64,000 bases of DNA from Glycera tridactyla (Eukaryota): the NCBI GenBank assembly GCA_965644265.1, contig OZ286465.1, positions 72,106,001-72,170,000 of the forward strand, read 5' to 3'. This document shows, piece after piece, positions 2,036 to 39,908 of this stretch; the first letter of the stretch is position 1; each line of letters begins with the position of its first letter. The notes beneath the pieces were generated by a model. That model saw nothing but the letters and a program-made list of their open reading frames with translations, had not been told where the DNA came from and ran no database searches. The position numbers and the translations under genes were made by a program.

Positions 2036-5000
2036 ACTTCTCCGCATGATATTGATGGTGATGGCGAGTCCACTGGGAGACCAGGGAGTGGTGATGGTGT
2101 CAATAAAGACATTGGCGGTCATCCTCATAAGCAGGGTCATCTTGATTCTTATCCAGATTTACCAGAAGTGTTAGACACATCATTTGATTCCAATGATATC
2201 CCTGAGCCTACCAGGCTCCCTAGCAGTGTTGATGACTCACATGTTTCAAAGGAAAATATCAGTGGTGATGGCGTAGATATGAAATATGAAATGAAGCATC
2301 CAAGTAATTTGACAAAGGTTCCGGGAAAGTTAGGACCATTTCAAATAAAAGATGGGAGCAAAGAAGATCAAGGCAATCAAAGTAACAAAGCATCCAAACA
2401 TCTATACACACCTGATCTGCAAAATCTAAAAAAATCAGATGATCCATGGGGTAGGAAAAAGCTTCGTGCTGCAAAACCAACACAGCCCAGTGAACCTAGT
2501 AGTTTGAAAGGTCATCTCCTCGGGAGGGAAAATTTTCCTGGTGCACTTGGTCCAGGGAGAAGAGAAGAACATAATCTTCACGATCATCCTGCCCTCAGGG
2601 CCTCAGATCCACACAAATTATTTCCAGCAGATCGTGATGCTAGGGATAGCAATCCTTTAGGCCGAAGTGACAGAGCAGATCCCTGGGGCCCATGGGAGAG
2701 AGGAGGCACAGAAGGGGCCTCTGATCCATACAAAACATTTCCATCAGATTCTGATATCAGCGATAGAAGGGGTCCTTCAGGCCCAAGAAATAGTGCAGAC
2801 CCCAGTGCTCCTTGGGAGAACGGAGGGAAAGATGGGGCCTCTGAGCCACACAAAAAATTCCCATCAGCTTCTGATACCAGGGATAGAAGGGGTCCTTCAG
2901 GCCCAAAAGATAGTGCAGACCCCAGTGCAGCTTGGGAGAGAGGGGGCACAGAAGGGGCGTATGATCCTCACAAAATATTCCCAGCAGATCCTTATGATAG
3001 CAACCCTCTTGGCCCAACCAACAGAACAGATCCCACGGCCCCCTGGGAGAGAGGAGGCACAAAAGTAACCCCCTATTCACACAAACCATTTCCATCAGAT
3101 CCCGATATCAGGGATAGAATTAGCCCTTCAGGTCCAAGAGACAGAGCCGACTCAAGGGCCTCATGGGAGAGGGGAGGCACAAAGGGAGCCTCTGATCCAC
3201 AGAGAAGAGAACCAGCTGGTAATGATCTTGGGCGTGGAATAGCTTCTATATACTCAAGAGTAGATCGGGATCCTCATGGTCATGCCAAGATGTTGCATCC
3301 AGATGATCGCTTGAATGCTGCAAAGGACCCTGGTCTTCGTAGTCCTTCCTATCCTGACCAGGCAAAAGATCTGCTTGACTCTGGTAGTAGGCCAGCGGGT
3401 ACCATTGATCACAGTAAGATGTTAGATCATTCTACTCCACATGACAAAAGTTTGAAAAGTGGTCAAAGTCATCCCCATGGACCACATGGAAAAAGAGGTG
3501 ATATCAAACCCTTCGGCAAGAATGAGTTCCATAGCCCCAGTGAGAGAGAGGGGTTGGGTGGACCTCATGGTTCCAATGACAGATGGTATCCTGACGATCC
3601 CAATGATCCTGCTAGGAAACAGGTAGGTAGCCCTTTTGTTAGTGATAGGAAAGGACAGGATGGTACCTCTGAGAAGAGATCTGATGATCCACATTCACCT
3701 AGTAATCTAGATGATCAGTATCTCAAAAAGAGAGCTGATTTTGATGACTTATCACGCAATCCATGGGAACATGATGATGACCAGGAAAGCCACCCTGAAG
3801 ATCTGGGTGATTCTGATGGTTCACACTCACTCCCTACTTTACCCATGAGGCATCCTAGCGATTTCACCAGTCCCCATGAAAACAGGCAATCACGGGGCCC
3901 CAAAAAGGAATTAGAGCCCGGCAATTCAAGTAGCCCAGTGGGTAGCAGCACAGATGATAGCTATCATCCTAGCCAGACAGGTCAACCAGGTTTTACTTGT
4001 AGTCCAGGTGGAATGCATAAGCCAGATGACATTCTCCATGCTGATGGAGAGCTAGTTGATACTGATGAAAGTGATCTAGATGAAAATCGCAATCTTGGTC
4101 AGAGAAAACACTCAACAGTTAGAGTATCAACTGACTCTCATTCCAGTACAGTTACTAGTAGTGTACATGAACAAAGGACAACCAAACATCGACATGAGAG
4201 GCATGATGACCCTGATCTTTCAAATGAAGATGATCTTAATTTAGGTGATCCTTCGGGTCGAAAAAGACTTCATTTAACTGATGTACTAGGCCAAAGGAGT
4301 AAGAGACATTCTGATGATTTGTTCCCAGCTTGTGACAATGAAGAGTCAGATAGCATCAGCTCTGATCAAGAACTTATGGCACCTCATAGGAATTCGGAAG
4401 TAGCTCACCAAAGACCGAAGAGGATGAAGGGAAATGGTGATCCACACTCTCCCTATAAAGAAAAACGGCTGGATGATCCCAGCGGAAAAGTACATCAAGA
4501 CCACTCTGAAGAATATAGTGGGGAGGATGATACCCCAAATAGGTTTGGTCAAAATCAGATTTCTCAACCTTCTAGCAATCCTATGTCCATCGATGGCGAT
4601 GATGAGCAATGTCAAGGACATGATTTTCCAACAGGTATGATTGAATCTCGAAGAAATAATGATGAAGATCATTCTAAAATTGTGATCACCACTGAACATC
4701 ATTCTAGTTCAGTGTCTAAGAGTATCTTCGAACGAAGGACAAGCAGGCAAACAAATGAAAGATGGGATGATGATTTCATATCAGAGGAAGATAATTCATT
4801 GTCAGATGATCCTTCAGGTGGGAAGAGGCCTCACCCAACTGGCAAGCTAGTCCCTAGGAATAAAAGACCTCTTCATGGTCGCCAGGTTCCTGATGAATCT
4901 GGGGACTCTGATGGCCTCAACTCAGATGAATATAGATACACAACAGATTCACCAGCCACTAGAGATATACGACTGGGTCAGCCCAAACCCAAGAGGGCAA

Positions 5001-8000
5001 AGGGATCCGTTAATAAACACCAATCAGATGCTGAAGAAGAGGTGGGTTCCTTTGATGAAGAATATCCTGACCGACCAACCAAATCTGACCAAACAGCTAG
5101 ACCTCATAAGGGAAACGGTAGAAAAATTGGTATTAGGGATAATTTGGAAGATTGTGATGATTTGGAGGAAGCAGAATTCAGTGATGAATCTGATAGAATG
5201 CTTCCTGATGATGCTGCTACACGGATATCGCGTGTGACCACCGAGCATCATTCATATGAGAGCAAGAGCACAACTGAGCACAGAATAGGGGAACACTCTC
5301 ATCAAGCTAGAAGTAAGAGAAGAGGTTTGCATCCGTATAATTACTCAGATGTCCCCAGTGATACAGATTATACTGATGATCCTGAATGGGGAGGTAGTAC
5401 AGATACTCATCCACAAAGAAGAGCTATTTCAGGTGATCCTGATGACCAATATGGTACATATCCAGACTATTTAAATGGCTCAGGTTATAAGAGGAGACCA
5501 GGTATCACTGATGATCCTTCCATCAGTGATTATTCTGATGGAGGATATGGCCCTGGCTATAACCCTGCTCTGCATCAGTCAAGTGGCAAGGGTAAGAGGG
5601 CAGTCCCTGAGGGCCAAGGCCATGCTAGCCACCAAGATGAGGGAGCAGATATTCTGATGGATCAAGAATCTGATACTCATGGATTAGTCAGCAAGAGGGA
5701 TCTTCAAGATCATCATGCTGATTCTCAAGGTCGTGGAAGGCAAGATAAGCCCATTGACCCAGCTATGGCAGGTACACATGACTTGCCAGATGATCAACAT
5801 CATCCAGGAAGAAGACCTAATTCTGATGATGCAGATGACATGGCTTCACCATTTCATTATGCTCCTGCTGGGAAAAGACATACCATCGACCCTGAAGGGT
5901 CTGATTCTCATGGGTGGCCTGATGATCCAGAGTTAGGTCAAATGAGGGATCCAGGTGACACACACGATGATCCCCGTGATCCTGGTAAAGGACACAAGCC
6001 AAGCAGTCCCAATAGGAGAGGAGTTGATCCAATTGCTCATAAAAGAGGCACACAAGACTATCCTACTGACCCACATGAGGATTTGGAGGAAGCAGAATTC
6101 AGTGATGAATCTGATAGAATGCTTCCTGAAGATGCTGCCACACGGATATCGCGTGTGACCACCGAGCATCATTCATATGAGAGCAAGAGCACAACTGAGC
6201 ACAGAATAGAGAAACACTCTCATCAAGCTAGAGGTAAGAGAAGAGGTTTGCATCCGTATGATTACTCAGATGACCCCAGTGATACAGATTATACTGATGA
6301 TCCTGAATGGGGAGGTAGTACAGATACTCATCCACAAAGAAGAGCTATTTCAGGTGATCCTGATGACCAATATGGTACATATCCAGACTATTTAAATGGC
6401 TCAGATGATAAGAGGAGACCAGGTATCACTGATGATCCTTCCATCAGTGATTACTCTGATGGAGGATATGGCCCTGGCTATAACCCTGCTCTGCATCAGT
6501 CAAGTGGCAAGGGTAAGAGGGCAGTCCCTAAGGGCCAAGGCCATGCTAGCCACCAAGATGAGGGAGCAGATATTCTGATGGATCAAGAATCTGATACTCA
6601 TGGATTAGTCAGCAAGAGGGATCTTCAAGATCATCATGCTGATTCTCAAGGTCGTGGAAGGCAAGATAAGCCCATTGACCCAGCTATGGCAGGTACACAT
6701 GACTTGCCAGATGATCAACATCATCCAGGAAGAAGACCTAATTCTGATGATGCAGATGACATGGCTTCACCATTTCATTATGCTCCTGCTGGGAAAAGAC
6801 ATACCATCGACCCTGAAGGGTCTGATTCTCATGGGTGGCCTGATGATCCAGAGTTAGGTCAAATGAGGGATCCAGGTGACACACAAGATGATTCCCATGA
6901 TCCTGATAAAGGACACAAGCCAAGCAGTCCCCATGGGAGAGGAGTTTATCCACTTGCTCATAAAAGAGGCACACAAGACTATCCTACTGACCCACATGAG
7001 GATAGGAGTCATGGCTGGCCTGATGATCAGCATGATCCAGGGAGAAGGGACATTTCAGATGGAGATGGCGACCCAGGCAGTCCTTATAGGAAAAAAGGTG
7101 ACTCACAAGCTGTTGATCCTGATGCAGATGACAGCCATGGGTGGCCTGGTGATCAGCATCATCCAGGGAGAAGGGACTTTCCAGGTAGAGGAGGTGACCC
7201 AGGTAGCCGGCATAGTAGAAATAAGGATCCATATGCCATTGACCCTGAAGCGGATTATTCTGTTGACCCTGATGAGGATGAAACTGATCCTCATGCTACT
7301 GGTAAAGGAGGTAACCCCACAGATGGCCAAGACTATGCATTTGACCCTCATAATGATGATATTCATGGGTGGCCTGATGATTCAGTGTCAGGTAGAATGA
7401 GTGATCCAAGTGACACAAACGGAGGGTATCCACATGCTCGTGAAACAGATGGGCAAGACTATCCAATTGATACTGATGAGGATGATACCCTTGGTTGGCC
7501 CGATGATCGGCATCATCCAGGAAGAAGGGCCATTCCAGATAGAGGAGACCAGGGTAGTCCCCATATGAGGAAAAGGGGCCCTCGTGCTCATGGAACAGGT
7601 GGAAAAGGTGATCCAATCGACTCTCATGATGATGATATCGATGGGTGGCCTGATGATTCAGTGTCTGGTAGAGACCCAGATGACACACATGCCGATCCTC
7701 ATAGTCCTGTTAGAGAAGGTTACCCCACCAGACCCCATAAGAGAGGAGGGCACCCACATGCTCTCGGAACAGATAGGCATGATGATCCTATCGACCCTGA
7801 TGAGGATGATACTCATGGGTGGCCTGATGATCAGCATCATCCAGGGAGGAGGGGCGTTCCTGGTAGAGAAGGCAGTCCAGGCAGTCCTCATAGAAGAAAA
7901 AGAGATCCACATGCCATTGCTCTTGATCAGGATGATTCTCAAGGGTGGCCTGATGATCTAGTGTGGGGTCAAATGAGGGACCCAGGGGACACAAGCGCCA

Positions 8001-11000
8001 ATCCTAGTGGTTCTGGTAGGGGAGGTGACCCTGCCAGTCCTCAGAAGAAAGGAGGGTACCCACGTAGTCGAGAAACAGATGGGGAAGACTATCCTATAGA
8101 CCCTGATGAGAATGATATTCATGGGTGGCCTGATCGACATCATCCAGGAATTTCCGATAGGCGAGGTGACCCAGGTGGTCCTCATGGAAGAAAAGGGGAC
8201 CCACATGCTATTGATCCTGATGAAGGTGAAGCCGATCCTCATGCTCCTGGTAGAGGAGGTGACCCCACCAGTCCCCATAAGAGAGGTAGGTTCCCAGATG
8301 CTAATGAAATAGATTGTCAAGATGATCCTGATGAGGATGATTCTCAGGGGTGGCCTGACGATCCAGTGTTAGAAAGAATGAGGGACCCAGGTGACGCACA
8401 CGCTGATCCTTGTGGTCCTGGTAAAAGAGGTGACCCTACAAGCCCCCATATGAATGGAGGGTACCAACATAGTCCAGGAACAGATGGGGAGGACTATCCT
8501 ACAGACCCTGATGAGAATGATATTCATGGGAGGCCTAATGATCAGCATCATCCAGGAAGAAGGACCATTCCGGATAGGCAAGGTGACCCAGGTGGTCCTC
8601 ATGGAAGAAAATGGGACCCACATGATATTGACCCTGATGAGGATGAAACTGATCATTGTCCTGGTAGAGAAGGTGACCCCACCCGTCCCCATAAGAGAGG
8701 AGGGTTCCCTCATGCTCGTGAATTAGATGGTCAAGATGATACTGATGAGGATGATTCTCAGGGGTGGCCTGATGATCCAGTGTTAGGTAGAATGAGGGAT
8801 CCAGGTGACACACACTCAGATCCTCGTGGTCCTGGTAAAAGAGGTGACCCCACCAGTCATCGTAAAAAAGAAGGGCACCCACATAGTCGAGAAACAGTTG
8901 GGGAGGATGATCCTACAGACCCTGAAGAAAATGATATTCATGGGAGGCCTGATCAGCATCATCCAGGAAGAAGGACCAATCTGGATAGGCCAGGCGACCC
9001 AGATGGTCCTCATGGAAGAAAATGGGACCAACATGCTATTGACTTTGATGAGGATGAAGCTGATCATGGTCCTGGTGGAGGAGGTGACCCCAACAGTCCC
9101 CATAAGAGAGGAGGGTTCCCTCATGCTCGTGAAATAGATGGTCAGGATGATCCTATCGACCCTGATGAGGATGATACTCATGGGTGGCCTGATGATCAGC
9201 AGCATCCAGGGAGGAGGGGCATTCCTGGTAGAGAAGGTTACCCAGGCAGTCCTCATAGAAGAAAGGGGGATCCACATGCCATTGATCCTGATCAGGATGA
9301 TTCTCAAGGGTGGCCTGATGATCCAGTGTTGGGTAAAATGAGGGACCCAGGTGACACACACGCCGATCCTAGTGGTTCTGGTAGGGGAGGTGACCCTGCT
9401 AGTCCCCATAAGAACGGAGAGTACCCACGTAGTCGAGAAACGGATGGGGACGACTATCCTATAGACCCTGATGAGAATGATATTCATGGGTGGCCTGATC
9501 GACATCATCCAGGAAGATGGGCTATTCCAGATAGGCAAGGTGACCCAGGTGGTCCTCGTAGAAAGCAAGGGGACCCACATGCTATTGACCCTGATGAGGA
9601 TGAAGCTGATTGTCATAGTCCTGGTAGAGGAGGTGACCCCACCCATCCCAATAAGAGAGGAGGGTTCCCTCATGCTCGTGAATTAGATGGTCAAGATGAT
9701 ACTGATGAGGATGATTCTCAGGGGTGGCCTGATGATCCAGTGTTAGGTAGAATGAGGGACCCAGGTGACACACACACAGATTCTCGTGGTCCTGGTAAAA
9801 GAGGTGACCCCACCAATCCCCATAAAAAAGGAGGGTACCCACATAGTCGGGAAACAATTGGGGAGGATGATCCTACAGACCCTGATGAAAATGGTATTCA
9901 TGGGAGGCCTGATCAGCATCATCCAGGAAGAAGGACCATTCTGGATAGGCCAGGCGACCCAGATGGTCCTCATGGAAGAAGATGGGACCCTCATGCTATT
10001 GACCCTGATGAGGATGAAGCTGATCCTCATGGTCCTGGTAAAAGAGGTGACCCCACCAATCCCCTTAAAAAAGGTGGGTACCCACATAGTCGAGATACAG
10101 TTGGGGAGGACAATCCTACAGACCCCGATGAAAATGATATTCATGGAAGGCCTGATGATCAGCATCATCCAGGAAGAAGGACCATTCTGGATAGGCGAGG
10201 TGACCCAGATGGTCCTCATGGAAGAAAAGGGGACCCACATGCTATTGACCCTGATGGGGATGAAGCTGATCGTCATAGTCCTGGTGGAGGAGGTGACCCC
10301 ACCAGTCCCCATAAGAGAGGAGGGTTCCCTTATGCTCGTGAAAAAGATGGTCAAGATGATCCTATCGACCCTGATAAGGATGATACTCATGTGTGGCCTG
10401 ATGATATGCATCATCCAGGGAGGAGGGGCATTCCTGGTAAAGAAGGTTACCCAGGCAGTCCTCATAGAAGAAAAGGGGATCCACATGCCATTGATCCTGA
10501 TCAGGATGATTCTCAAGGGTGGCCTGATGATCCAGTGTTGGGTAAAATAAGGGACCCAGGTGACACACACGCCGATCCTTGTGGTTCTGGTAAAAGAGGT
10601 GACCCCAACAGTCCCCATAAGAAAGGAGGGTACCCAAATAGTCAAGATACAATTGGGGAGGATGATCCTACAGACCCTGATGAAAATGATATTAATGGGA
10701 GGCCTTCTGATCAGAATCATCCGGGAAGAAGGACCATTCCGGATAGGCGAGGTGACCCAGATGGTCCTCATGGAAGAAAATGGGACCCACGTGCTACTGA
10801 CCCTGATGGGGATGAAGTTGATCGTCATAGTCCTGGTGGAGGAGGTGACCCCAACAGTCCCCATAAGAGAGGAGGGTTCCCTCATGCTCCTGAAATAGAT
10901 GGTCAAGATGATACTGATGAGGATGATTCTCAGGGGTGGCCTGATGATCCAGTGTTAGGTAGAATGAGGGACACAGGTGACACACACTCAGATCCTCGTG

Positions 11001-14000
11001 GTCCTGGTAAAAGAGGTGACCCCACCAGTCCCCATAAAAAAGGAGGGTACCCACATAGTCGAGAAACAGTTGGGGAGGAAGATCCTACAGACCCCGATGA
11101 AAATGATATTCATGGGAGGCCTGATCAGCATCATCCAGGAAGAAGGACCATTCTGGATAGGCCAGGCGACCCAGATGGTCCTCATGGAAGAAGATGGGAC
11201 CCTCATGCTATTGACCCTGATGAGGATGAAGCTGATCCTCTTGGTTCTGGTAAAAGAGGGGACCCCACCAGTCCCCTTAAAAAAAGAGGATACCCACATA
11301 GTCGAGATACAGTTGGGGAGGATGATCCTACAGACCCTGATGAAAATGATCTTCATGGGAGGCCTTCTGATCAGCATCATCCAGGAAGAAGGACCATTCC
11401 AGATAGGCGAGGTGACCCAGATGGTCCTCATGGAAGAGAAGGGGACCCACATGCTATTGACCATGATGGGGATGAAGCTGATCATCATAGTCCTGGTAGA
11501 GAAGGTGACCCCACCAGTCCCCATAAGAGAGGGTTCCCTCATGCGCGTGAAATTGATGGTCAAGATGATCCTATCGACCCTGATGAGGATGATACTCATG
11601 GGTGGCCTGATGATCTGCATCATCCAGGTAGGAGGGGCATTCCTGGTAGAGAACGTTACCCAGGTAGTCCTCATAGAAGAAAAGGGGATCGACATGCCAT
11701 TGATCCTGATCAGGATGATTCTCAAGGGTGGCCTGATGATCCAGTGTCAGGTCAAATGAGGGATCCAGGTGACACACACGCCGATCCTAGTGGTTCTGGT
11801 AAAAGAGGTGACCCCACCAGTCCCCATAAAAAAGGAGGGTACCCACATGGTCTAGAAACAGATGGGGAAGACTATCCTACTGACCCTGATGAAGATGGTA
11901 TTCATGGGAGGCCTGATCAGCATCATCCAGAAAAGGGGGTTATTGCAGATCGGCGAGGGGACCCAGGTGGTCCTCATAGAAGAAAAGGGGACCCACATGC
12001 TATTGACCCCAATGAAGGTGAAGCTTATCCTCGTGATCCTAGTAGAGGAGATGACCCTAACAGTCCCAATAAGAGAGGAGGGTATCCACATGCTCATGAA
12101 ACAGATGGGCAAGACTATCCAACTGATCTTGATGGGGATGATAACTATGGTTGGCCTGATCATCAGCATCATCCAGGGAGGAGGGGCATTCCTGGTAGAG
12201 AAGGTTACCAAGGCAGTCCTCATAGAAGGAAAGGGGATCGACATGCTATCGATCCTGATCAGGATGATTCTCAAGGGTTGCCTGATGATCCAGTGTTGGG
12301 TCAAATGAGGGACCCAGGTGACTCACGCACCCATCCTTGTGGTTCTGGTGAAGGAGGTGACTCTACCAGTCCTCATATGAAAGGAGGGTACCCAGATAGT
12401 CAAGAAACAGATGCGGAAGCCTATCCTATAGACCCTGATGAGGATGATACTCATGGGTGGCCTGAAGATCAGCATCATCCGGGAAGAAGAAGCAATCCAG
12501 ATGGACGAGGTGACCCAGGTGGTCCTCATGGAAGAAAATGGGATCCACATGCTATTGACCCTGATGCCCGTGAAAAGGATGGGCAAGACTATCCTACAGA
12601 CCCTGATGAGGATAATATTCATGGGTATCCAGACCAAGGTTACCCAGATGGTCCTCATGGAAAAGGGGATCTACATGCCATTGACCCTGATGAGTATAGT
12701 ACTCATGGGTGGCCTGGTGATCAGCATCACCTAGGAAGAAGGACCATTCCAGATAGACGGGGTGACCCAAACGGTCCTCATAGAAGAAATGGGGATCCCC
12801 ATGCCATTGACCCTGATGAGGATGATACTCATGGGTGGCACGATGATCACTATCATCCCGAGAGAAGAGCATTAGGTAGAGAGAGGGACTCACAAGCTGA
12901 TCCCCATGGTCCTGGCTGGGGACATAACTCAGGCAGTCCCCATAGGAAAGGAACGGACCCACATGATCGTGAATCCTTCGGAACAGACCAACCTATTGAC
13001 CCTTATGTGGACGACAATCATGATTGGCCTAATGATCAGCATCATCCAGGGAGAAGAGCCATTCCAGATAGAGGAGGTGACCCAGGCATTCACTATAAGA
13101 GAAAAGGGGACCCACATGCAAGCCCTCGTGGAAGAAGAGCTGACCAAGGTACCTCTGATTCAGATGAGGGGAATCATCCATTTCATTCTTCCAAGCCTGA
13201 TACCATTGGTAGGCCACGTGGCCTGGGCACAGTTGGACCATATGGTGCTGACAGCCATGGTCCTTATGGCAGGGACTCTGATAGCACTCATACATCAAAT
13301 GCCAGTGATTATGCTGATGACAATTATGGCCCTGATGACATAGGGAGTCGAAGCTATCAAAATGATTGTCCTGGCCAGAGAGGTTCTATTGGTCCAGAAT
13401 ACCATTCAGGAAGTCCTGACGGCTATCTCAATCATGGGGATAGAAGGCCTTCAAAAAGTCAACCCTATTCTGAAGACATTTCTGGAGATTCAGACAATCC
13501 TGGGTTTGGACACTATGGCAACTCCAGGCCTAGCAAAAGAAAAACATACCATCCAAGTCAAAAAAGACACCAATCTGATCCACATAGACCTCGTGAAACA
13601 GAGAGCTCTGTTGATCCCTATGACTCCAGCAGTAGTGGAGGGCCAGGAAGTTGGACTGATCATGGTGGGAGACACCATCCGAGTAAGCACGGTGGCTCAG
13701 GTCATCAAGGTGGAGGGCCTGACAGGCCTAGTGGTAGGCAAGGTAGAGCACGTCCTAGTTTTGATTCTATCCCAGATAGTCCGTTTTTCCCATTTGGCTC
13801 AATGTTCTCAAATTGGCCACATGATCCTAGACCACTTGGTAATTCTGAACGAACTTACAGTCCAGGGAATCTTCCATGCATCCTCTGTGGTCGTGGGGGT
13901 CCAATTACACCATGCAGAATTTGTGGTGTAGGTGGACACAGTGAGCAGTTCTGCCCCCAAAGTCTCGATGGAAATGACACATCTTATGGACCTAGCCTCA

Positions 14001-17000
14001 GTGATCACAGCTCTTTTGGAAGAAGAGGCCCTCGTGTTTCATTCCCATCAGAAGGGTTCAGCTCTCCAACTAGCCCCAATTTTGGCCCTCATGCTTTTCT
14101 GTCTAGCCATAGAAAGCGTGGTGATGGTCCTCACATAAGTTCACTCAATCCTAGTTTGAGTGGGAGTGAGCCATTCCTGAACTATCCTACATACGATGAT
14201 TCCCGGAATCGAGGTGGTGGAACCAACCCACGTGATCCACGTGATAGTTATGACAGCAGAGTTTTTGATGACCATCCTGGGAAACGTCCACCGCGTAGAG
14301 GAAGTCAGGAATTTGGTGGTAGAAGATCTAACCATCATGTGCCAGCAAATAGAAGGCATGATGACTTGTATGACCCTCCTGGCAGAAATATTTCTGGTGA
14401 GAACCAGGACCCGATGGGTGAACAACCTGGCCAGAGGTATCCATATGATCAAAGTGATGAAAGGCCTCGAGGCACCCAATTTGATCCACGTCATGCACAT
14501 GGTTCAGATGATATGCCTCGTCATGAGAGGGATACCAAGCCCAGAAAAAGTGTAGATTTTCAGGAACCCCAAAGTAACAGGAGAGCACCAGAAGCTGAAC
14601 ATGATATCGATAAGAGAAGGTATCCTGGAGCTTCATGTAGAAAAGGCATTGTGGGAAGTGATGCAAGTCTGGATGATCAGTCTTCCAAAGAAGTTGAGAG
14701 AGGCGCAAATGATGATGATGACTCTGATTCTACACACCCTGACAATATATATGAGCAACAAGTCAGGAGATCACCCCATAGTAAACATGGTGCAAGTAGT
14801 ATGGGTGACCATGGTGGCCCATCTGAATCATGTCAGCCTAGTGGGGACAATGATTATCCTGAGTCATATGGTCGGAGAGATGACCCTGAAATGCATTGCA
14901 GTACAAAAGATGGCAAAGATCTTCTGGATGATGGTGGTCCTCATGTAGCAGATAGGTGGAGGGATGCTGATTACCCAGATTCCATGCAAAATAAAGATCC
15001 TTCTAACAGGTATCCGGACAGTACCTCATATGATCAAGAGGTGAATGAGAGGGACGAGGAAGGTGATCATGAGGTTCAATTTGATTTTAGTGGCAACCCT
15101 GGTAAATTATATGGACAAGATGGGTGTGACAGCGATGATCGATATTTTGCAGGAAACAAAGGTGCCAGTGGTATATCTGACCCTTATAGAGAGCCACATG
15201 ATATTTTTGGCCCAGATAGTACAAAACCAAGCCACAAGAGAGAATCAAGACCTCATAGAATCAGCAGCAAAACCTCACTCCCCAATGTTTCATCACAAGG
15301 GTATGAACCAGGCAGCAAATGTACAGGTGATCACTCTGGCTCAGGTGTCCGAAGGAATGATCCACATGGCCAGTCTCAGAGAAGTCCAGTAGATTTCTCT
15401 GGTGACCATTACACATATGAGCCATGTATGCCACATGCTAGTCATGATTCTGCAGTCACTGAAAGCAGTGGTTCTCCTGGTGATTCACCTATACCCTATA
15501 TGAAGCAGCCTCTTGATAATCAGCATGGAACAGGAATTGATCGCCTGGTAGGCAGGGAAGAACCAAGTAGATTGTATGATACAAAGGAAAGTATGGGTGA
15601 TGCAGATGTAGATGCAGATATTGCTAAAAATGTTGAGCCTGGTTATGACAACTGTCCACCCATGAGTACAGGTGAAGGTACCAAACCAGTATCAGCTGGC
15701 CAATATGGTCTCTGTATTGGCATTATTGGGAGCAATGATCAGCAAACTGATTGCAGTGAGAATACAGGGCAAGACATTGATGATAATCATTCTGATATGA
15801 AAAGTGATGATGAATTCCCATGTGGGCCTGTGGGGAGGGATGAGAGGAGAGGGAAGAATAGAAATAGGGTGGGCCAAGATTCCAAGGATGGCCTTGCCCC
15901 TGACTTTGATACTACTGAGGCAGGAGTCCCATCTAAAAGACTAACAAGCAGGGAACCACAGAAACAGGATGAGGACAGTAGTAGGACTGATGGCCTGCCT
16001 GACCCTAGTGCTGAACCGAACTTTCCTAATTCACGTCGAATGGATCAGTATGGTGATGATCCATGTGAGCCGAGACCTGGCCATGATCAGGATAGTGAAG
16101 CTGGTACTGACGCCACAAATGATAATGATGGCCAAGGTGATCCGGTTGACATTCAAAGGTTAGGTCGTGTTCTTGAAGATCCTAATAGTTGTGCTAGAAT
16201 AGACAGATCTCCATACTCAGTAACAGGACCTCTTCCTGATACTGAAAACGATAAGTCATTACTAGACAGACATGAGGCAGGGAAAAATATGGGAGTACCA
16301 ACAGGTGATTCGCACCATAAAAATACAAAAAATGATGAAGATTCCCGAAGCAATACTCCTGTTTCTACCCCTGGTGGTGATGCAGACAAGGGGAGCATGG
16401 TGAATCCATTTGACCTGAGTAAAATTATACGTAGTGAAGATCTTCTTGGTGGCAGGAAGGCCCTCAAGAGATTAGGTGAATCAAGTCAGCCCGATCTCAC
16501 TTCAGGTAGGAAACATATGCCTCAGTCGCACAACAATGGCCTTTATGACTACACAAGTACTGATGATAGCATTGCTGATCCTGATGACCCATTTGTTCAC
16601 CTTGGTTTGCGATCCCCAGAGACCCACAGGAGGAAGCCATTTGGTCGAAAAACACCTCCAGCCAAGGATATTGGCAGATCCCCATCACTCATTCCAAGTG
16701 ATGGAGTAGTCAAAGATCAGCAGCAGGCAGTAGCTCATCAAGCATTGCTGAATGACTTGAATGCAATTTTCAAACAAGTGAGAAAGCCAGAAGACCGAAA
16801 AGATTTACGTCGTCCAAGTAGCCTTGCGAATGATAATGTGCAGATCAGGCGCCCTGCTGATAGGGAATTTAACCGGCCACTTTCTTTCCCTCCACTCAGT
16901 GCATCTGCAAAAGATAATAGTGAATCTGAGGCTGAAGACAATGGTAAGAATATTGCCCAAGATATTGCAAAAAAGCTGCAGAGTATTCTTGCACGTACAA

Positions 17001-17269
17001 AGCCAGATACCGACTCTATTTCCTCAGTAAGTCAGCAACATATAAATATGCCTGGCCAGTCTGGAAATTCAGGGAAATCTCAAAAACATGCTCCAATTAT
17101 TGATGATCCTGTTCCAAAGTCACAAAATAATCTTCTAGAAGATATTGAACCTGACGACTCAGTCAAGGAAGATGACCTTGGTAATGTTGATCACCGCCAT
17201 AGTCTCAAAGGGACACCAGGTGGTTTGGGAGGTGATGGTGATAATCATTTTGGACCTGGAACTGCGAAG
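2036..17269 (+). CDS. Giant 15,234-nt (5,078-codon) phase-0 exon encoding a D/P/G/H/R/S-rich repetitive disordered region; probable filamin insert exon
   Basis: ORF 2168..17275 (5035 aa) stays open 44 codons upstream to acceptor tttcatcacttctag|act (2035/2036). It ends at donor gcgaag|gtatga (17269/17270), two codons before the ORF stop. Length is a multiple of 3. Confidence 0.85.
2599..3200 (+). repeat. Five ~120-bp (37-40 aa) diverged coding repeats ending in WE(R/N)GG
   Basis: GASDPHKLFP...PWERGGTE / GASDPYKTFP...PWENGGKD and three further copies are visible in the translation. Confidence 0.85.
5159..7003 (+). repeat. Near-identical 921-bp (307-aa) tandem duplication inside the giant exon
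   Basis: tttggaggaagcagaattc at 5161 and 6082; ccacatgagg at 6071 and 6992; both offsets are 921. Confidence 0.92.
7000..13100 (+). repeat. Coding repeat array (GWPDD/QHHPGRR/GDPxSPH/DPDE modules) with higher-order periodicity
   Basis: Anchor gatgattctca (DDSQG) occurs at 7931, 8336, 8750, 9296, 9710, 10505, 10922, 11714 and 12263. Confidence 0.9.
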
Positions 17270-17702: not shown

Positions 17703-18428
17703 TATGGTCCTGATGGCAAACCGATTCATGGAGTTGGATATGGACCAGATGGTTCTCCACAGGGAAAGCAGGAGAGTAGTGGCTTGCTTGGATCTAATGG
17801 ACAGAGAGTCAATAGAAGGAGAAAAGATGGGCATGGCAATCATTGTGAGGAGGAGGATGTGAAGGGCATAGATGTGGATGATGATGGAATACCTACACCA
17901 GATGTTCAGAGATATGACTTCAGGTCACCTGGCAATGATGGTGTACAAGGACAAGATCGAGTTGGAGGTCGTAAAGTACTCGGCCATGGTGAAGATGGTA
18001 ACATTGAATCAGATTATAGGAGAGGCAACCAAATGGGGAAAGATGGTGAATTTGGAGTAGATGGCAGTAAGCATGGCCAAGGAAGGAATGAGATGTATGA
18101 TGAGGATGCAGACTCAGGACCAGATGAACAGGCAGGCCATGGCAAGGACGGGCCTAGATCCAAGAGATATGGACTAGATCATCTGAAGCCTGGTCAAGCT
18201 GGAGATGATGAAGGATATGAGCCAGATGGGCTAAGATCTAAACCCAGAAGCCCCAGAAATGACAACTATGGAGCTAACGGCGAGAGATCCCGACATGATC
18301 ATGATGATGATGAGGTAATTTCGTCAAATGAAGAAAAGTACCTTGGGCAGCAACCGGATATTAGTGGTGATCGAGATACAAAGCAACAAGATGGTACAGG
18401 AGGAGGGCATCATCAAAAAAATGATAAG
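17703..18428 (+). CDS. Phase-0 insert exon (242 aa, YGPDGKPIHGVGYGPDG...HHQKNDK); alternative in-frame donor at 18314
   Basis: Acceptor ttatttatag|tat, in frame with ORF 17784..18521. Donors gag|gtaatt (18314) and aag|gtacat (18428). Same G/D/R-rich composition as neighbouring exons. Confidence 0.75.
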
Positions 18429-18605: not shown

Positions 18606-18731
18606 TTTGATCTACATGGACGTCACAGGAAGGACAAACATACTTCTGAAGAGGGTGAAGAGGATGACTATTCTGGTGATAATGTGGCTGGAGCAGAGAG
18701 CCCAAGTCATCATGGTGGTGATGATGCCGAG
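18606..18731 (+). CDS. Phase-0 insert exon (42 aa, FDLHGRHRKDKH...HHGGDDAE)
   Basis: Acceptor ttatttctgcag|ttt and donor gccgag|gtactt; 126 nt within ORF 18525..18791. Confidence 0.75.
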
Positions 18732-21695: not shown

Positions 21696-23053
21696 AAGTG
21701 TGTGAAATAGGTGGGTGAAGTATGGTTGGCGCTAAATTTTCGCAATCTTGTTAATCCCATGCATGCATGGTGGAGGGATCAGCCGAATGCATTTAGTGCG
21801 AAAACATGATTTTGTAGATAAAAGTGCAAGGATTATTGCTGCCTTTGGAAAGTGATAGAGATGACTTCATCGAAAGGATACAATCTCACAGGTATGTCTG
21901 TGGATTGTCGACAATTTGTCAACATGGTCATAAGCAGAACAGAAGATTGTGACAATCTGCTACAATTGTCAGTCAGCAGAACCTGTCCCTCATCTGCAGC
22001 CATATTATACATGCCTGCTGACTGTTATCAGTCATCTTTGGATTGCTAGGAATTTAGAGCTCTTGGCTTTGCTGCTCTAAGTATTGAAATACTATCATAC
22101 TTGAATATATCTTAGGATTTCAAATGTATCCTAGTATCCACGAGTATCAAGGCATACATAACAATCACAGAACTTTGCATTTTGTGCAAAACATCCAAGA
22201 TGGATAATCTGGGAATACCATTTTCTATCACAAAAAACAATATGTGATTACTTGTATGATTCATTTCAGCATGTCAGCAGTCTGTCTTGCACCTTTATCT
22301 TTTATCAAGAGAATGTTATTGCTGGGGATTTCAGTTACATCATTTCTGGATATATATTCTAGAAGGTGATTGTAACTACACAGGCAGGCACAGAAATATA
22401 GACAGGTGTCCTTTACATGAAAGTGGTGCATATGATCCTAAATGGTTTGTTGCTGTGAGATGTCAGAAAGTAATTATTCTTGATTGTGTGACTGCTTCAG
22501 ACCTCTTGATATATTCAAACCACTTCATTTATAGAATTTGTTTCATTTCGTTGCTGTAGGAGTGCATTCGCTCTCATTCATAACTCCCAACTTCTACATA
22601 TATCTGTAGTGCTAACATATGGTGTGGTGGTTTTATTGCCAAATCATTTTTGTAATAGTCTTTTCCGGCTGTAAAATGATTTTGACTTTTTTCTGTGATC
22701 TTAATTTTCACGAATGAGGGAGAACCGGCTTGTAGCAGAGTCAAACTTGTTTTAAGCATGAGGGACTTGGTGGAGCTGTGTGCTAATAGGGTGTCCCTGC
22801 TTAGTACAAATCAGTTAAAGTGATATTTGCTGTGTTTGGATGATTTCAACCTGTATGTTAGCACAAGTTGTGGTTTGAACAAGTTTGAGCCAACCTATTT
22901 TTATTCTGTAAGGCATATGCCGATGAACTGTCTGCTTGCTCTTATGCTTTTTTAACAATCTTTGATGACTTCTTACACTAGTCTGGCCAAGATGATCAGA
23001 GGGTTTCACATGCAAGAAAACCAGGCACTCATTATGGACATTCATCAAATCAG

Positions 23054-23827
23054 AAAGTGGGGAAAGATCTTGTAGATGATGCTGAAATGAATGATGAAAC
23101 TGCTGGTTCTCCAGTACATGGACTAAAAAGACCAAACCATGATGATGCCAATGTTGATGAACCAGGAGTAAGAAGTCAATATGATAATGACCGATCTGGG
23201 AGAGGACTTGTTGGTAGGAGAGATGGGAGTAATGGGAATTCAGATCCAAGTAGAAGCAAGTACTCCAGTGGGGAAGATAATGTCGATGAAGGTACTAAAG
23301 ATGCCAGGAAGGAATATGGTGATAGTGATCCAAGCATGTCTATAGGACATATTGGAGAGGGAGCGTTATCTGAACATGGAAAACCAGATGATCACAAAAA
23401 CAAATATGACACAGAGGGTAGTAGTGATGGAGAGGGAAATGCTGACAGAGATGGAAAGAAACACAATTATGGACACAGGGGTACATTAAGTGATGATAAG
23501 GAAAATCGACATCATGGAGATATAGACATTGGTGATGAAGATTATGAATATGGCTCTGGTGGGAGAAGGGCTAAACTTCGTCACAGTCACCCAGATTCAT
23601 CAGATGATCAAATTGCATCTGATCCGACCTTGCATGGTAACAATAACGGAAGTGATCCAAGAGGTGGAAGGAGCCATCCACCATATGGCCCCAAAGACCA
23701 GAAATTCGGTTCCAATGGCCAGCAGCCTCCTGGTAGACTTGGACGTGATGACGATGACTTAGATCCAAATGGTGGAGGGTTGTTTGGAAAGGACAGGCAG
23801 CTTAACAGTCCAGATGAGCATCTGGAG
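23054..23827 (+). CDS. Phase-0 insert exon (258 aa, D/G/H/S-rich)
   Basis: Acceptor catcaaatcag|aaa, in frame with ORF 23057..23866; donor ctggag|gtaatt; 774 nt. Confidence 0.75.
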
Positions 23828-24776: not shown

Positions 24777-27467
24777 TATGGACGGGATGACGATCCTGGC
24801 AGAGGAAGTGGAAGCGATGATGAATTTGGACAGCACAGAGGAAAAGGAGATAATGATCTGGATAAATACGGACCAGACGGACAAAGAATGGGAAGAGGGA
24901 AAGGTGGAAGGGGTGGAAGTGGACATGGGGGAGATGGAGATGATGATGAATATGGACCAGATGGTAAAAAGAGGGGTAGAGGAGGGCCAGGAGGAGATGG
25001 CGATGATGGATATGGACCAGATGGCAGACTTAGGGGTAGAGGAGGGCCTGGGGGAGATGGAGATGATGATGAATATGGACCGGATGGAAAGAGAAGGGGT
25101 AGAGGAGGGCCTGGAGGAGATGATGACGAATATGGACCGGATGGAAGGAGAAGGGGTAGAGGAGGGCCCGGGGGAGATGGGGATGATGATGAATATGGAC
25201 CGGATGGAAGACGAAGAGGTAGAGGAGGACCTGGGGGAGATGGAGATGATGATGAATATGAATATGGACCAGATGGAAGACAAAGAGGTAGAGGAGGACC
25301 TGGGGGAGATGAAGATGATGACGAATATGGACCAGATGGTAAAAGGAGGGGTAGAGGAGGGCCCAGAGAAGATGGGGATGATGATGAATATGGCCCAGAT
25401 GGTAGACAAAGAGGTAGAGGAGGACCTGGGGGAGACGGAGATGATGACTATGGACCAGATGGGAGACGGAGAGGTAGAGGAGGACGTGGGGGAGATGGAG
25501 ATGATGAGTATGGACCAGGTGGAAGAAGGAGGGGTAGAGGAGGGCCTGGGGGAGATGAAGATGATGATGATGAGTATGGACCAGATGGAAGAAGGAGGGG
25601 TAGAGGAGGGCCCGGGGGAGATGGAGATGATGATGACTATGGACCAGATGGGAGGCGAAGGGGTAGAGGAGGGCCTGGGAGAGATGGAGATGATGATGAA
25701 TATGGACCAGATGGAAAGAGGAGGGGTAGAGGAGGGCCTGGGGGAGATGGAGATAATGATGAGTATGGACCAGGTGGAAGAAGGAGGGGTAGAGGAGGAC
25801 CTGGGGGAGATGGAGATGATGATGAATATGGACCGGATGGAAAGAGGAGGGGTAGAGGAGGGCCTGGGGGAGATGGAGATAATGATGAGTATGGACCAGG
25901 TGGAAGAAGGAGGGGTAGAGGAGGACCTGGGGGAGATGGAGATGATGATGATGTGTATGGACGGGATGGGAGACAAAAGGGTAGAGGAGGACCCGGGGGA
26001 GATGGCGATGATGATGAATATGGACCAGATGGGAGACGAAGAGGTAGAGGAGGGCCTGGAGGAGATGGAGATGATGATGAATATGGACCAGGTGGAAGAC
26101 AAAGAGGTAGAGGAGGACCTGGGGGAGATGAAGATGATGATGAATATGGACCAGATGGGAGACGAAAAGGTAGAGGAGGACCTGAGGGAGATGGAGATGA
26201 TGAATATGGACCAGATGGGAAGAGGAGGGGTAGAGGAGGGCCTGGAGGAGATGGAGATGATGATGGATATGGACCAGATGGAAGAAGGAAGGGTAGAGGA
26301 GGGCTTGGGGGAGATGGAGATGATGATGAATATGGACCGGATGGAAAGAGGAGGGGTAGAGGAGGGCCTGGGGGAGATGGAGATAATGATGAGTATGGAC
26401 CAGGTGGAAAAAGGAGGGGTAGAGGAGGACCTGGGGGAGATGGAGATGATGATGATGATGTGTATGGACGGGATGGGAGACAAAAGGGTAGAGGAGGACC
26501 CGGGGAAGATGGAGATGATGATGAATATGGACCAGATGGGAGACGAAGAGGTAGAGGAGGGCCTAGAGGAGATGAAGATGATGATGAATATGGACCAGGT
26601 GGAAGACAAAGAGGTAGAGGAGGACCCGGGGGAGATGAAGATGATGATGAATATGGACCAGATGGGAGACGAAGAGGTAGAGGAGGACCCGGGGGAGATG
26701 AAGATGATGATGAATATGGACCAGATGGGAGACGAAGGGGTAGAGGAGGGCCTGGAGGAGATGGGGATGATGATGAATATGGACCAGATGGTAGACGGAG
26801 GGGTAGAGGAGGACGTGGGGTAGATGGAGAGGATGATGAATATGGACCGGATGGAAGACGAAGAGGTAGAAGAGGGCCCGGGGGAGATGGAGAGAATGAT
26901 GAATATGGACCAGATGGGAGACGAAGAGGTAGAGGAGGGCCTGGGGGAGATGGTGATGACGAGTATGGACCGGATGGGAGGCGAAGGGGTAGAGGAGGGC
27001 CTGGAGGAGATGATGATGATGATGATGAATATGGACCAGATGGGAGACGAAGGGGTAGAGGAGGACCTGGGGGAGATGGAGATGATGATGAATATGGACG
27101 AGATGGAAGAAGGAAAGGTAGAGGAGGGCACGCGGGAGATGGCGATGGTGATGAATATGGACCGGATGGAAGACGAAGAGGTAGAAGAGGGCCTGGGGGC
27201 GATGGAGATGATGACGAATATGGACCAGATGGGAGTCGAAGGGGTAGAAGAGGACCTGAGGGAGATGGTGATAATGATAAATATGGACCAGATGGCAAGA
27301 GGAGGGGCAGACATGGCAAAGATAAATTTGGACCTGATGGACGCCGGATTGGTGGACATGATGGATCAGAGGACAGTGATGGAGACTATGATCCAGATGG
27401 TGAACTCGGTCCAGATGGCCAGCCTCTAAAAGGCAGAGGGGGAAGGAGAGGTGACAGGGATTTAGAG
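24777..27467 (+). CDS. Phase-0 insert exon (897 aa) built from ~37 tandem copies of YGPDGRRRGRGGPGGDGDDDE
   Basis: Acceptor catttctatcag|tat and donor ttagag|gtacaa; 2,691 nt within ORF 24669..27512; all length variants between repeat units are multiples of 3. Confidence 0.85.
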
Positions 27468-33644: not shown

Positions 33645-33902
33645 GTGATTGCCACTGGACCTGGTTTGGAGAAGCAGGGTGTCACCGTCAACAAATGGGC
33701 CGAGTTCTCGATCGATGCACGCCGTGCCGGAAAGGCGCCACTCTCGGTGAAGTGCATGGATGCTGAATACAATCCTGTGGATGTGATTGTCAAGGACAAC
33801 CATGATGGGACCTACTGGTGCCAGTACATGCCCACCAAGAACATCAAGCACACCATCACCATCACATGGGGCAACGTCTCCATCCCCAACAGCCCCTTCA
33901 GG
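33645..33902 (+). CDS. FLNA: Filamin exon: Ig-like repeat equivalent to FLNA Ig5 (VIATGPGLEKQGVTVNKWAEF...SIPNSPFR)
   Basis: Acceptor ttcttttctgtgcag|gtg (phase 0) and donor agg|gtcagt. Close match to recalled FLNA VKARGPGLEKTGVAVNKPAEF...KHTAMVSWGGVSIPNSPFR. Confidence 0.95.
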
Positions 33903-36430: not shown

Positions 36431-36776
36431 GTATATGTGCAGGAGGCCAGTAACCCAGCCAATGTCAAGGTCTTCGGACCTGCCCTTGAGGGACCCGTCA
36501 AAACGTTCAGCCCAACTCATCTCATTGTCGACTGCTCGCAAGCTGGACCCGGCGATGTCGCCATCGCACTCACGGACGAGCGCGGTCTCGACGTACCCGT
36601 TCACACCACAGATAACAACAACAACACCTTCCGTATTGACTTTGAGCCACGCACAGTTGGAATGTACACATGCAGTGTCTTCTTCGCCGAGCAGGAGATT
36701 CCAAGCTCGCCCTACCAGATCAAGGTCGAGCCCAGCATTGACCTCAGCAAGGTCCATGTAGATGGACTGGAAAAGA
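36431..36776 (+). CDS. FLNA: Filamin exon: Ig6-like repeat running directly into the start of an Ig8-like repeat
   Basis: Acceptor ttttgatag|gta and donor aaga|gtaagt (phase 1). Reads VYVQEASNPANVKVFGP...VDCSQAGPGDV...SPYQIKVEPSIDLSKVHVDGLEK. Confidence 0.92.
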
Positions 36777-36850
36777 GTAAGTCCAAGTATTCTGTTTAAT
36801 TCATATAACTATTATGATCCATGGGCAATAGGTCCATCAAATATGCCAAT

Positions 36851-37005
36851 NNNNNNNNNNNNNNNNNNNNNNNNNNNNNNNNNNNNNNNNNNNNNNNNNN
36901 NNNNNNNNNNNNNNNNNNNNNNNNNNNNNNNNNNNNNNNNNNNNNNNNNNNNNNNNNNNNNNNNNNNNNNNNNNNNNNNNNNNNNNNNNNNNNNNNNNNN
37001 NNNNN
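36851..37005. other. Assembly gap (N run)
   Basis: 155 consecutive N. Confidence 0.98.
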
Positions 37006-38135
37006 CACACAACCATTCATATGCATGCACACACCCAAATACATGTACACATATACAAACACCATACATTCACAAACTTGCATGCACAAATATGCTCGTG
37101 CATACACAGAAACCCACACAAACACACATACTGAAGCCACCAAGCTGTATACCATTCACATGCACTTTGAGTCATTTTCCTTAATCATGATTCCATTCTC
37201 ACTCTTTTAGCATTACTTCAATATCATTTACACTGCTATCTATTATATTTGAACTATATAGAATCATTTATCCAGCTTCTCCCCTTGTTTCAGTTCTGTG
37301 AAAGTCAAATATTCTGTTTTTGTGTCCTTACAGAAGCTATAATTAGGAAGCCACAAGAGTTTCGTGTTATTATTCCCCAAATTCATGGTAAATTCAAGCA
37401 GATAATGGAATCTGTATCGAGAGAATTATTCACCAACGAAGGTGACACCTGCACTTGCCAATTTCATCACTTTTCCAAATTTGTCTTCACAGCTTTCATG
37501 TGAACGCACTCCGAGAATCCACTCTCTACAATCTCTATCTGATACTCTACTTCTGTATAAAGTTCATGACTTTATGGATCCATATCTATGACACATAAGG
37601 TCAGATGTCACTGACAGTGGTCGTATGTAAAGCTGCCGTTACGAGGTCTTACTATGATAAAGGTAGAAATATCTGCTTGGCAGATACCACAAAAATTGAG
37701 TCATGTCCATTTGATTGCTAATATCAGTATCATGGTATGTGGGTTCATATCTGTCATGTACTGCAATGAAACTACATGTTGCACATCTTAACCATTACTT
37801 GGATTTGATATTCCTTTTGCTTTGACACTGTCTTTGTATTTGTTTTCTTCAGTTCTCATTCACCCATTTGTTCATTCCTTCTGTCATTTGTACATCCATT
37901 ATACTGGGTTATCAGAATATGTCAAATCCGGAATCTACCGAGCATAAATTGTGTTCAGAATCTGGCAGTTTCGACACGCTATTCTTCTATCAGTCATGTT
38001 TGAATTGGGAATGGATTATAGAAAAGTAAGTGATTGCCAACAGATCAGAAACTGGATCATTATGTGTTGTTGAGTTTTCAGTATGTACAGAAATCAGACA
38101 TAGGTGCTAAGCCAAGTTTTCTTCCCCTACTATAG

Positions 38136-38729
38136 CTGTACCTGTTGGCAAGGAGAAGGCATTCAACATTGTCACGGCTGGTGCTGGAACGGGTGTCGTA
38201 CAGGTGGCACTTGTATCACCAACTGGCAAAGTGACGCCAGCTAGCGTCGCCGAAACTCCTAATGGATTCACATCCAAATTCACTGCCTATGAACCAGGAC
38301 CCCATCAGATCCACATCACCTTTGCTGGCCAGCCAGTATCCGGGAGCCCATTCACTGTTGAGGCTGTTCCTGACAAAGCCGTCACTGTCCCCAAGGGAGA
38401 CCCAACCAAGGTGAAAGCCTATGGTCCTGGTCTGAAGGGAGGCACTGCTAATGTGCCTGCGGAGTTCACTATTGATACTCGTCAAGCTGGTCCAGGTGGT
38501 CTCGGTCTCACTATCGAAGGACCATGCGAGGCTAAGATTGAATGCTTTGACAAAGGCAATGGCACCTGTGATGTGCGTTATTATCCCACCGAGCCTGGAG
38601 ATTACAAGATCAACATCACCTTTGCTGACAAACCAATCACCAACTCACCATTCACCTCTAAAATTCAGCCGTCCAAGCGTGTTGATGTCAGTGGTATCAA
38701 AGCCTATGGACCTGGCTTGGAGCCAACTG
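38136..38729 (+). CDS. FLNA: Filamin exon: Ig8-like, Ig9-like and start of Ig11-like repeats
   Basis: Acceptor cccctactatag|ct and donor actg|gtaaac. Contains KVKAYGPGLKGG...GGLGLTIEGPCEAKIECFDKGNGTCDVRYYPTEPGDYKINITFAD. Confidence 0.95.
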
Positions 38730-39489
38730 GTAAACTACTCCATCTTGTGGATTGGCATGGCAATCAGTGTGACCCACTTTCTAATCATGAACTGCATCCT
38801 GATTGGCTAGATTGATATAGAAGCTTGTTGAATGTTTCCAGCTCTCTCATAGGTCAGCTCCTTGTTACCAACACCCGGATCGGTTCCTCTTGCAAGCTAT
38901 GATGTGTCAGGATGTTTGATTGGTTAATGATGACAGTTCATTTGCAGCTCAATCACTGTATTGCTGATATGGCAGGATACATGTGTTTGTGTACTCCCCT
39001 CTGTGTTTTCACTAATAAATGTGTGGATATTGATACTTTACTCCCCGACTACATCAGTTCAATGTTGACTAACCAGTGTGGTGATGCCTGCAGCATGACT
39101 CTCTAATATACCTTTTTGCCTTATCGGCAGTACGTTGTTAGATATGAAATGTAACAGGGGCAAATTTTGAACTATTTTGATGAGAATATTGAGAGTGAAA
39201 TTGAAATTGAGGTCTATTTACGGGGACCACAATATTGTAACTTCTGCAGTGTGCGACTTATGTTCTGCTCAACTCAATCTCTTGAGATGATTGCTAGTGT
39301 GAGGGAATCAAAGGGATGTATTCCGGGAAAAAATCCACTTACCTAGGTCAGGTAATCCATCACCTCTATGATCATATCTCATGAGTACATGTTTCAACAA
39401 TAACCTCATAAAATAGATTCTTGTTATCTTTTTGCATCATTTGGATTGCTTGAGAATGATACACATTCTCATCAGCTCACTCTATCATA

Positions 39490-39845
39490 GGCAGAACTTT
39501 TTCAGCCACTCTCCCATCGGTAGAGCAGATTGGGAGAATCACTCTCCCGAGAATGAATTCACTCTCCTGAATTTGTGCAAGTCCCACTAACATATATTTT
39601 CCTGAGGTTAGTTCTTCAGAATCATACATGTGCAGGCAAATGCAATGCCTACTCACAGGGACTAGGGATTATTGTTGGTGTAATCAAAATTGTGGTTTTC
39701 TGTCTTCACAGAAAATCCATCACTCTCTCATCAACTGAAAATTCCCACTCTCCCCATCGGGAGAGTGAGTTGGAAGTTTCACTCTCCCGAAATCAAATCC
39801 ACTCTCCCCGGGATTCGGGAGAGTGCTAAATATGAAGACTGCATA
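39490..39845. repeat. Cluster of CACTCTCCC direct/inverted motifs; possible MITE remnant
   Basis: About 7 cactctcc(c) copies plus inverted gggagagtg; termini not clearly defined. Confidence 0.4.
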
Positions 39846-39908
39846 AGTAAATCATAACCAAGAACATTTATACTGGATGAAGCTATCTTTCATCTGTCTG
39901 AAATTGCT

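Follow-up and report, generated by a model that had tools for sequence, protein, structure and literature searches.

A 15.2-kb open frame in the filamin gene of Glycera tridactyla probably represents a giant, lineage-specific disordered exon

The filamin locus and its inserted frames

The window analysed here is a 64,000-nucleotide (nt) stretch of the Glycera tridactyla genome (GenBank assembly GCA_965644265.1, contig OZ286465.1, positions 72,106,001 to 72,170,000 of the forward strand), and all positions below refer to this window unless another locus is named. Its right-hand part holds repeat exons of a filamin gene on the plus strand, which extends past both window ends. Its left-hand part holds one uninterrupted 15,234-nt open frame (E1, 2036..17269, +; 5,078 codons, phase 0-0), followed by four shorter open units (E2 to E5), all of which lie in the intron between the fourth and fifth immunoglobulin-like (Ig) repeats of filamin. 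A canonical filamin consists of two CH domains and ~22-24 Ig repeats; the N-terminal CH domains of this gene and its C-terminal dimerising repeat would lie outside the 64 kb. We found that E1 is coding, that its frame is under selection, and that it has a defined position within filamin at which relatives carry nothing comparable; no homologue of it was found in our searches. On balance, we favour the explanation that E1 is a genuine coding exon, the largest of five lineage-specific disordered exons that occupy the Ig4/Ig5 intron as a cassette-like spacer. A preliminary description of this DNA had treated E1 as a single internal exon. The context that it lacked is that E1 is a lineage-specific insertion in the filamin gene.

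The giant open frame E1

The plus-strand frame of E1 is free of stop codons from 2036 to 17272, and positions 2036-17269 comprise exactly 5,078 sense codons. Upstream, the frame is closed by an in-frame TAG (2033-2035), which doubles as the acceptor AG at the end of a pyrimidine tract (...ttctag|). Downstream, it is closed by a TGA at 17273-17275, four bases past the AAG|GTATGA boundary, in a donor context of GCGAAG|gtatgaca. The remaining five frames of 2036-17269 contain 103-869 stops, and the 28-64 kb part of the window has a stop about every 19 codons (598-638 per 12,000). As ~3.5% of the possible point changes in E1 would yield a stop codon (3.1-3.5% over the comparisons made), chance cannot explain the open frame. 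Nor is it merely a stop-free unit that has been multiplied, since unique sequence accounts for 44% of E1 (~6.7 kb). The first ATG in frame encodes residue 82 and is preceded by 81 Met-free codons. The preliminary description had reported 5,078 open codons between a polypyrimidine-AG and AAG|GTATGA, in DNA whose introns are rich in stops. The codon count is exact, the frame and stop counts place it far beyond chance, and the high density of stops in the surrounding introns is borne out. The internal-exon anatomy also stands: both splice sites conform to the consensus, the length is 3 x 5,078 nt and the phase fits the next exons.

Self-similar sequence makes up 56% of E1. In its N-terminal part, a block of 120-nt (40-amino-acid) repeats (2598..3201, +) has ~4 copies (Tandem Repeats Finder period 120, 71% matches). 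A young 921-nt tandem duplication (5155..7003, +) has copies that are 97.8% identical and gapless. The main repeat region (7691..13119, +) is composed of 41-, 82- and 138-amino-acid modules, whose copies are 71-90% identical, and it holds the majority of the 19 'HHPGRR'-type motifs that occur over E1. An antisense open reading frame (ORF) of 387 amino acids is also present within this repeat region (9743-10906, -).

The offsets of the E1 repeats are all multiples of 3. Between copies that have diverged by 10-25%, no stop has arisen and each of the 23 indel runs measures 3 or 9 nt, although these indels are not fully independent, because the repeat pairs compared have copies in common. The G+C contents of the three codon positions are 0.64 (GC1), 0.50 (GC2) and 0.29 (GC3), and this strong 3-base periodicity does not differ between the repeated parts and the unique N-terminal and C-terminal sequence. 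Because there are no stops, in-frame indels only and a uniform periodicity, we conclude that the E1 frame has been maintained by selection, in agreement with what had been proposed from the open frame at the outset. The residues themselves appear to be weakly constrained. The ratio of nonsynonymous to synonymous substitution rates (dN/dS) between E1 repeat copies is 0.5-0.8; it had been intended as a test of selection on residues and is not used here as support. For the 921-nt duplication, which contains only 20 changes, dN/dS is uninformative.

These observations bear on whether the frame might be functionless, being either a very young exonised or a never-expressed frame generated by repeat expansion, or else a mis-assembled repeat array. 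The self-similar 56% of E1 would fit such an origin, as would dN/dS values near those of off-frame controls, third positions that are AT-rich as in the surrounding introns, the lack of homologues in the searches made, and a 1.1-kb tandem satellite found in the same intron of one orthologous locus (L001, see below). However, the diverged copies contain no stops and only in-frame indels, and they would be hard to collapse or inflate in an assembly. The unique 44% of E1 is open too, and the three-base periodicity is clear throughout. We thus regard a frame devoid of function as highly improbable.

We also counted splicing signals within E1, for which the preliminary description had proposed special splicing control. 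It contains 11 donor-like sites and 5 acceptor-like ones; the latter occur at 0.33/kb, compared with 0.7-2.9/kb in long introns, and GAR-type purine motifs occur at 5.8/kb, compared with ~1/kb. The small number of acceptor-like sites and the many GAR motifs fit exon definition but may be a simple effect of amino-acid composition. The internal sites could alternatively mean that E1 is coding but is spliced internally in most mRNAs, so as to give a family of shorter inserts, and modular repeats offset by multiples of 3 would tolerate in-frame removal. On the other hand, all 15.2 kb are stop-free, including the 6.7 kb of unique sequence, which is expected only if all parts are translated in at least some transcripts, and acceptor-like sites are several-fold rarer in E1 than in introns. 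Predominant internal splicing therefore seems quite unlikely to us.

Four further candidate exons

Downstream of E1, four shorter candidate exons, each of phase 0-0, lie on the same strand. E2 (17703..18428, +) has 242 codons and is Gly/Asp-rich, with a disordered composition. E3 (18606..18731, +), with 42 codons, is the least certain of the five. E4 (22982..23827, +) has 282 codons. E5 (24777..27467, +) has 897 codons and consists almost entirely of a 63-nt array (24926-27311) with ~38 copies, in which acidic (Gly/Asp) and Arg/Gly blocks alternate and a peptide motif recurs in register 39 times. The E5 region is open in further frames and on the minus strand (ORFs of 890 and 560 amino acids), because it is nearly without T and C. 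We take the long minus-strand ORFs at 9743-10906 and 24687-27359 to be by-products of repeat composition.

All of E1 to E5 have a pyrimidine-tract YAG acceptor, a RAG|GTA donor and a length that is a multiple of three, and thus all five are phase 0-0. None is closed by a stop of its own ahead of the donor. Combined, they comprise 6,541 codons, and their product of 6,541 amino acids would have a mass of 711 kDa and an isoelectric point (pI) of 5.0. No similarity among the five was detected at E 1e-3, so that they are alike in composition only. Neither AATAAA nor ATTAAA is present in 17270-17702, between E1 and E2.

The host gene and orthologous loci

The first filamin exon after the insertion (33645..33902, +) encodes Ig repeat 5 (Pfam Filamin, 8e-23) and opens with a phase-0 acceptor whose codon position is shared with the relatives. 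It matches best the Ig5 portion of the human FLNA Ig3-5 structure (PDB 4m9p, 104.7 bits). Further filamin repeat exons (36431..58564, +) are collinear with residues 822-1662 of Filamin-A of Lamellibrachia. Filamin/ABP280 repeats (Pfam PF00630) were identified in four downstream exons with E values of 8e-23 to 2e-41, the downstream exons match PDB chains of filamin A, B and C, and a profile built from the window's own repeats gave ~11 repeat segments in 33.6-58.6 kb. The Lamellibrachia satsuma Filamin-A (P0144) is a protein of 2,468 amino acids with two CH domains and 22 Filamin repeats, and the window exons at 33630-58564 align in order with its residues 731-1662 at 52-89% identity. In P0144 coordinates, the insertion lies between K735 and V736, at the Ig4/Ig5 boundary. 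The closest matches of the filamin exons are metagenome/Logan contigs (<=74% identity), and among named relatives annelids show 62-67%. Identity to vertebrate filamins is only ~50-65%, and we know of no such giant exon in them; a vertebrate or human origin was rejected on these grounds.

Three collinear orthologous filamin loci of distant relatives (L001, L005 and L006) have a phase-0 intron at exactly the insertion codon, with lengths of 1,694, 316 and 345 nt, respectively. No exon comparable to E1-E5 exists in the Ig4/Ig5 intron of any of these three loci. In the window, the same intron is longer than 31.6 kb and holds E1-E5. A closer relative (L008) has an Ig5 exon with 93% amino-acid and 86% nucleotide identity to that of the window, and the introns are unalignable.

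Two other features of these relatives were observed. In L001, a 1.1-kb tandem satellite with a 360-amino-acid minus-strand ORF lies in the Ig4/Ig5 intron (L001 5916-6998), and this intron is therefore able to host repeat arrays. A short Pro/Lys/Ala-rich disordered linker is found between Ig2 and Ig3 in relatives (L005 4857-5141; P0144 ~478-550), at a position other than that of the E1-E5 insertion.

Composition and predicted disorder of the insert

The E1 product is dominated by Asp (15.5%, the commonest residue overall), Gly (12.1%), Pro (11.8%), Ser (8.6%), Arg (8.3%) and His (6.5%), with Glu at 4.7%, Lys at 4.2%, Thr at 4.1% and Val at 1.9%. It would have a mass of 557 kDa, a pI of 5.1, a grand average of hydropathy of -1.59 and a charged fraction of 0.33, and its hydrophobic fraction is 0.10-0.26 per 250-amino-acid block. 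Charged residues make up 33% of the inserted chain, Pro + Gly 24% and His 6.5%, which makes it an acidic polyampholyte. For the last 578 amino acids of E1, AlphaFold gave a mean predicted local distance difference test (pLDDT) score of 43 and no more than two isolated helices, and for the 82-amino-acid repeat unit a pLDDT of 54 without secondary structure; as they come from single-sequence or shallow alignments, these models can do no more than support the indication from composition. From its low hydrophobicity, its high content of charged residues and Pro/Gly, and the lack of a confident fold, the E1 chain is predicted to be intrinsically disordered.

Pfam scans of E1 (as halves and as ten pieces), E2, E4 and E5 yielded nothing above the cut-off. 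A zinc-knuckle pattern, C-x2-C-x4-H-x4-C, occurs once in E1 (13913..13954, +; amino acid 3960) and scores below threshold against Pfam zf-CCHC_4 (16.7 bits, cut-off 27). The pattern may have arisen by chance, or it may be what is left of a retroelement Gag. A degenerate copy of the knuckle precedes it at amino acid 3948. The tripeptide RGD is present 19 times in E1 (7.9 expected by composition), mainly within the repeat modules, and, in a cytoplasmic protein, the excess probably just follows from the presence of the repeats. We also considered a mucin or secreted acidic matrix protein and rejected it, as there is no signal peptide context and the host gene is cytoplasmic.

Homologues of the insert were sought in several ways. 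A word-index protein search with E1 residues 1-3500 and 3500-5078 gave no match among the proteins of 2,800-8,900 amino acids that it covers, and a full annotation of 9,000 amino acids would therefore escape it. An exhaustive HMMER search with the last 1,200 amino acids of E1 against 1.84 billion representatives gave 0 matches. When the alignment of the repeat unit was back-translated and scanned against JGI metagenome contigs, 600 pattern matches were returned, 0 of which were confirmed. Our literature search found no paper on a 'giant filamin' or on a filamin with a 'giant exon'.

Codon usage, origin and inclusion in filamin

We then compared codon usage between the insert and its host. GC3 is 0.29 in E1, 0.21-0.28 in E2, E4 and E5, and ~0.21-0.30 over the inserted exons, whereas it is 0.55 in the filamin exons (33645-45775), and the correlation of relative synonymous codon usage between inserted and filamin exons is ~0. 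This sharp difference in GC3 (0.29 vs 0.55) suggests a young, lineage-specific origin. We infer that the insert is a young lineage-specific addition, derived from AT-rich intronic sequence and grown by in-frame tandem duplication.

A codon usage quite unlike that of the host gene would also be expected if E1, with or without E2-E5, were a separate gene on the same strand that is nested in the filamin intron and encodes a free giant disordered protein. Nested genes are common in long introns, none of the three orthologous loci has the insertion, and E1 has a mono-exonic reading, from the Met at residue 82 to the stop one codon past the putative donor. However, the E1 frame opens exactly at a pyrimidine-tract AG, with 81 Met-free codons ahead of the first ATG, and five consecutive phase 0-0 units have consensus splice sites without closing the frame before the donor. 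In addition, E5 is phase-compatible with the Ig5 exon, and neither polyadenylation hexamer (AATAAA or ATTAAA) occurs in 17270-17702. A nested gene is thus unlikely, though more probable than the other alternatives.

Several observations weigh against our favoured explanation, a set of coding exons of filamin. The E1 frame ends one codon beyond the proposed donor (TGA 17273), so that an unspliced or terminal reading of E1 is possible. Its repeat dN/dS is barely separable from shifted-frame controls and gives no sign that particular residues matter. The codon usage would also suit a unit that is separate or seldom translated. As E5 is open in several frames by composition, its open frame alone is weak evidence. 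The L008 contig is only 1.7 kb long, too short to show whether the insertion is present or absent in this closer relative, and the upstream Ig4 exon lies beyond the window, so that its join into E1 is unseen.

If E1-E5 are filamin exons, their history would have begun with the exonisation, probably recent, of intronic sequence within the conserved phase-0 Ig4/Ig5 intron, and the insert would have grown through in-frame tandem duplication. Splice-site anatomy and phase suggest that the five exons are included in filamin mRNA and behave as cassettes. Because all five are phase 0-0, any combination could be included or skipped with the filamin frame intact; skipping all five would give an ordinary filamin, and including all of them would give a protein of ~9,000 amino acids. 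Judged by composition only, the insert may be a long and flexible linker that acts as a tether or an entropic spring; its contour length would be ~1.9 um with E1 alone and 2.5 um with the five exons together. It would separate the actin-binding head and Ig1-4 from the remaining rod and the dimerisation end.

Other features of the window

A 103-codon acidic open frame (47322-47630, +) lies within the 12-kb intron that separates the filamin exon with its end at 45790 from the one with its start at 57789. Neither Pfam nor the relatives gave a match to this frame, which might be due to chance or might represent a further lineage-specific exon. Copies of an interspersed element are found in introns at 28914-29141 and 33976-34173, with similar sequences near 45745-46161 and 62163-62318. 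They have a common open frame with the recurring motifs 'RPPSV' and 'LYREVVF', and the element is probably a SINE-like or transposable-element-like repeat. Two runs of N, both intronic, were left unfilled (27929-28079, 151 bases; 36851-37005, 155 bases). No Rfam family was found within the window.

Significance

If the exons are part of filamin mRNA, they would constitute the largest filamin insertion known to us. In the resulting cross-linker, tethers longer than 1 um would carry the actin-binding heads, an arrangement that should alter network compliance or Z-disc mechanics. Their inclusion would also provide a dated example of the birth of a giant disordered exon, with exonisation, in-frame duplication, selection on the frame rather than on residues, and intron-like codon usage as its steps. 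In eight eukaryotes, longer internal exons more often encode disordered regions (PMC9825244), and with inclusion, this model could be tested on a case of very recent origin. Should filamin mRNA lack the exons, the locus would still hold, within a conserved gene, an orphan open frame of giant size whose reading frame is under selection.

A bolder proposal is that, in an invertebrate lineage, filamin was made into a titin-like elastic filament of micrometre scale by a disordered spring of ~6,500 residues, built de novo from intronic repeats between Ig4 and Ig5, whose many His/Asp motifs might let pH or divalent metals tune its stiffness. We consider this quite improbable. If it were true, a giant elastic cytoskeletal protein would have originated independently, and the locus would be a clear case of >700 kDa of coding sequence being born de novo.

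Comparison with known systems

The preliminary description had compared E1 to the largest exons of titin, AHNAK and mucins. The comparison holds for size, as those genes also contain single internal exons of 15-20 kb made largely of in-frame repeats, but it does not extend to kinship, since no relatives were found, or to composition, which differs. Unlike a mucin, E1 is not dominated by Ser, Thr and Pro (24.5% in total), and its host is cytoplasmic. Unlike AHNAK, it lacks the 128-amino-acid AHNAK repeats and has no protein or Pfam match, and unlike the large titin A-band exon, it has no folded Ig or FN3 domains.

A closer parallel may be the PEVK segment of titin, which is ~70% Pro, Glu, Val and Lys, consists of PPAK repeats of 26-28 amino acids or of polyE repeats, and is encoded by many small exons. 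Spring segments are also known from the invertebrate titins Sallimus, I-connectin and TTN-1. By analogy, both PEVK and the insert are long, Pro-rich, charged and repeat-built disordered segments between Ig-type domains, and the insert may likewise act as an entropic spring with a length set by exon inclusion. There is no sequence similarity between the two, however. Pro, Glu, Val and Lys make up ~23% of E1, in which Asp, Gly and His dominate, and E1 is one 15-kb exon with modules of 41, 82 and 138 amino acids, with other motifs and with filamin as host.

Filamin acts with titin at the fly Z-disc (PMC5521747), and a role of the insert in muscle would be speculation by analogy. Zasp52, a Z-disc scaffold of Drosophila, has a long disordered region that is alternatively spliced (PMC13521563). 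It is another protein, with a disordered region much shorter than the insert.

Large disordered cassettes are also found in microtubule-associated proteins. Exon 4a of Big tau is a large, acidic, disordered cassette in a cytoskeletal binding protein, with little constraint on its primary sequence (PMC12896622). The insert resembles this exon, and also the large MAP2 exons, as a large acidic disordered spacer with weak sequence constraint. Exon 4a encodes ~250 amino acids and occurs across vertebrates, whereas the insert is ~20-fold longer and is absent from three orthologous loci.

Within the filamin family itself, hinge 1, hinge 2 and the 82-amino-acid insertion in Ig20 of FLNC are flexible, partly alternatively spliced segments that tune flexibility and binding. 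Like them, the insert would be a flexible non-Ig segment placed between or within filamin repeats. The known insertions amount to tens of residues, at Ig15/16, Ig23/24 and Ig20, whereas the one described here comprises ~6,500 residues at Ig4/Ig5.

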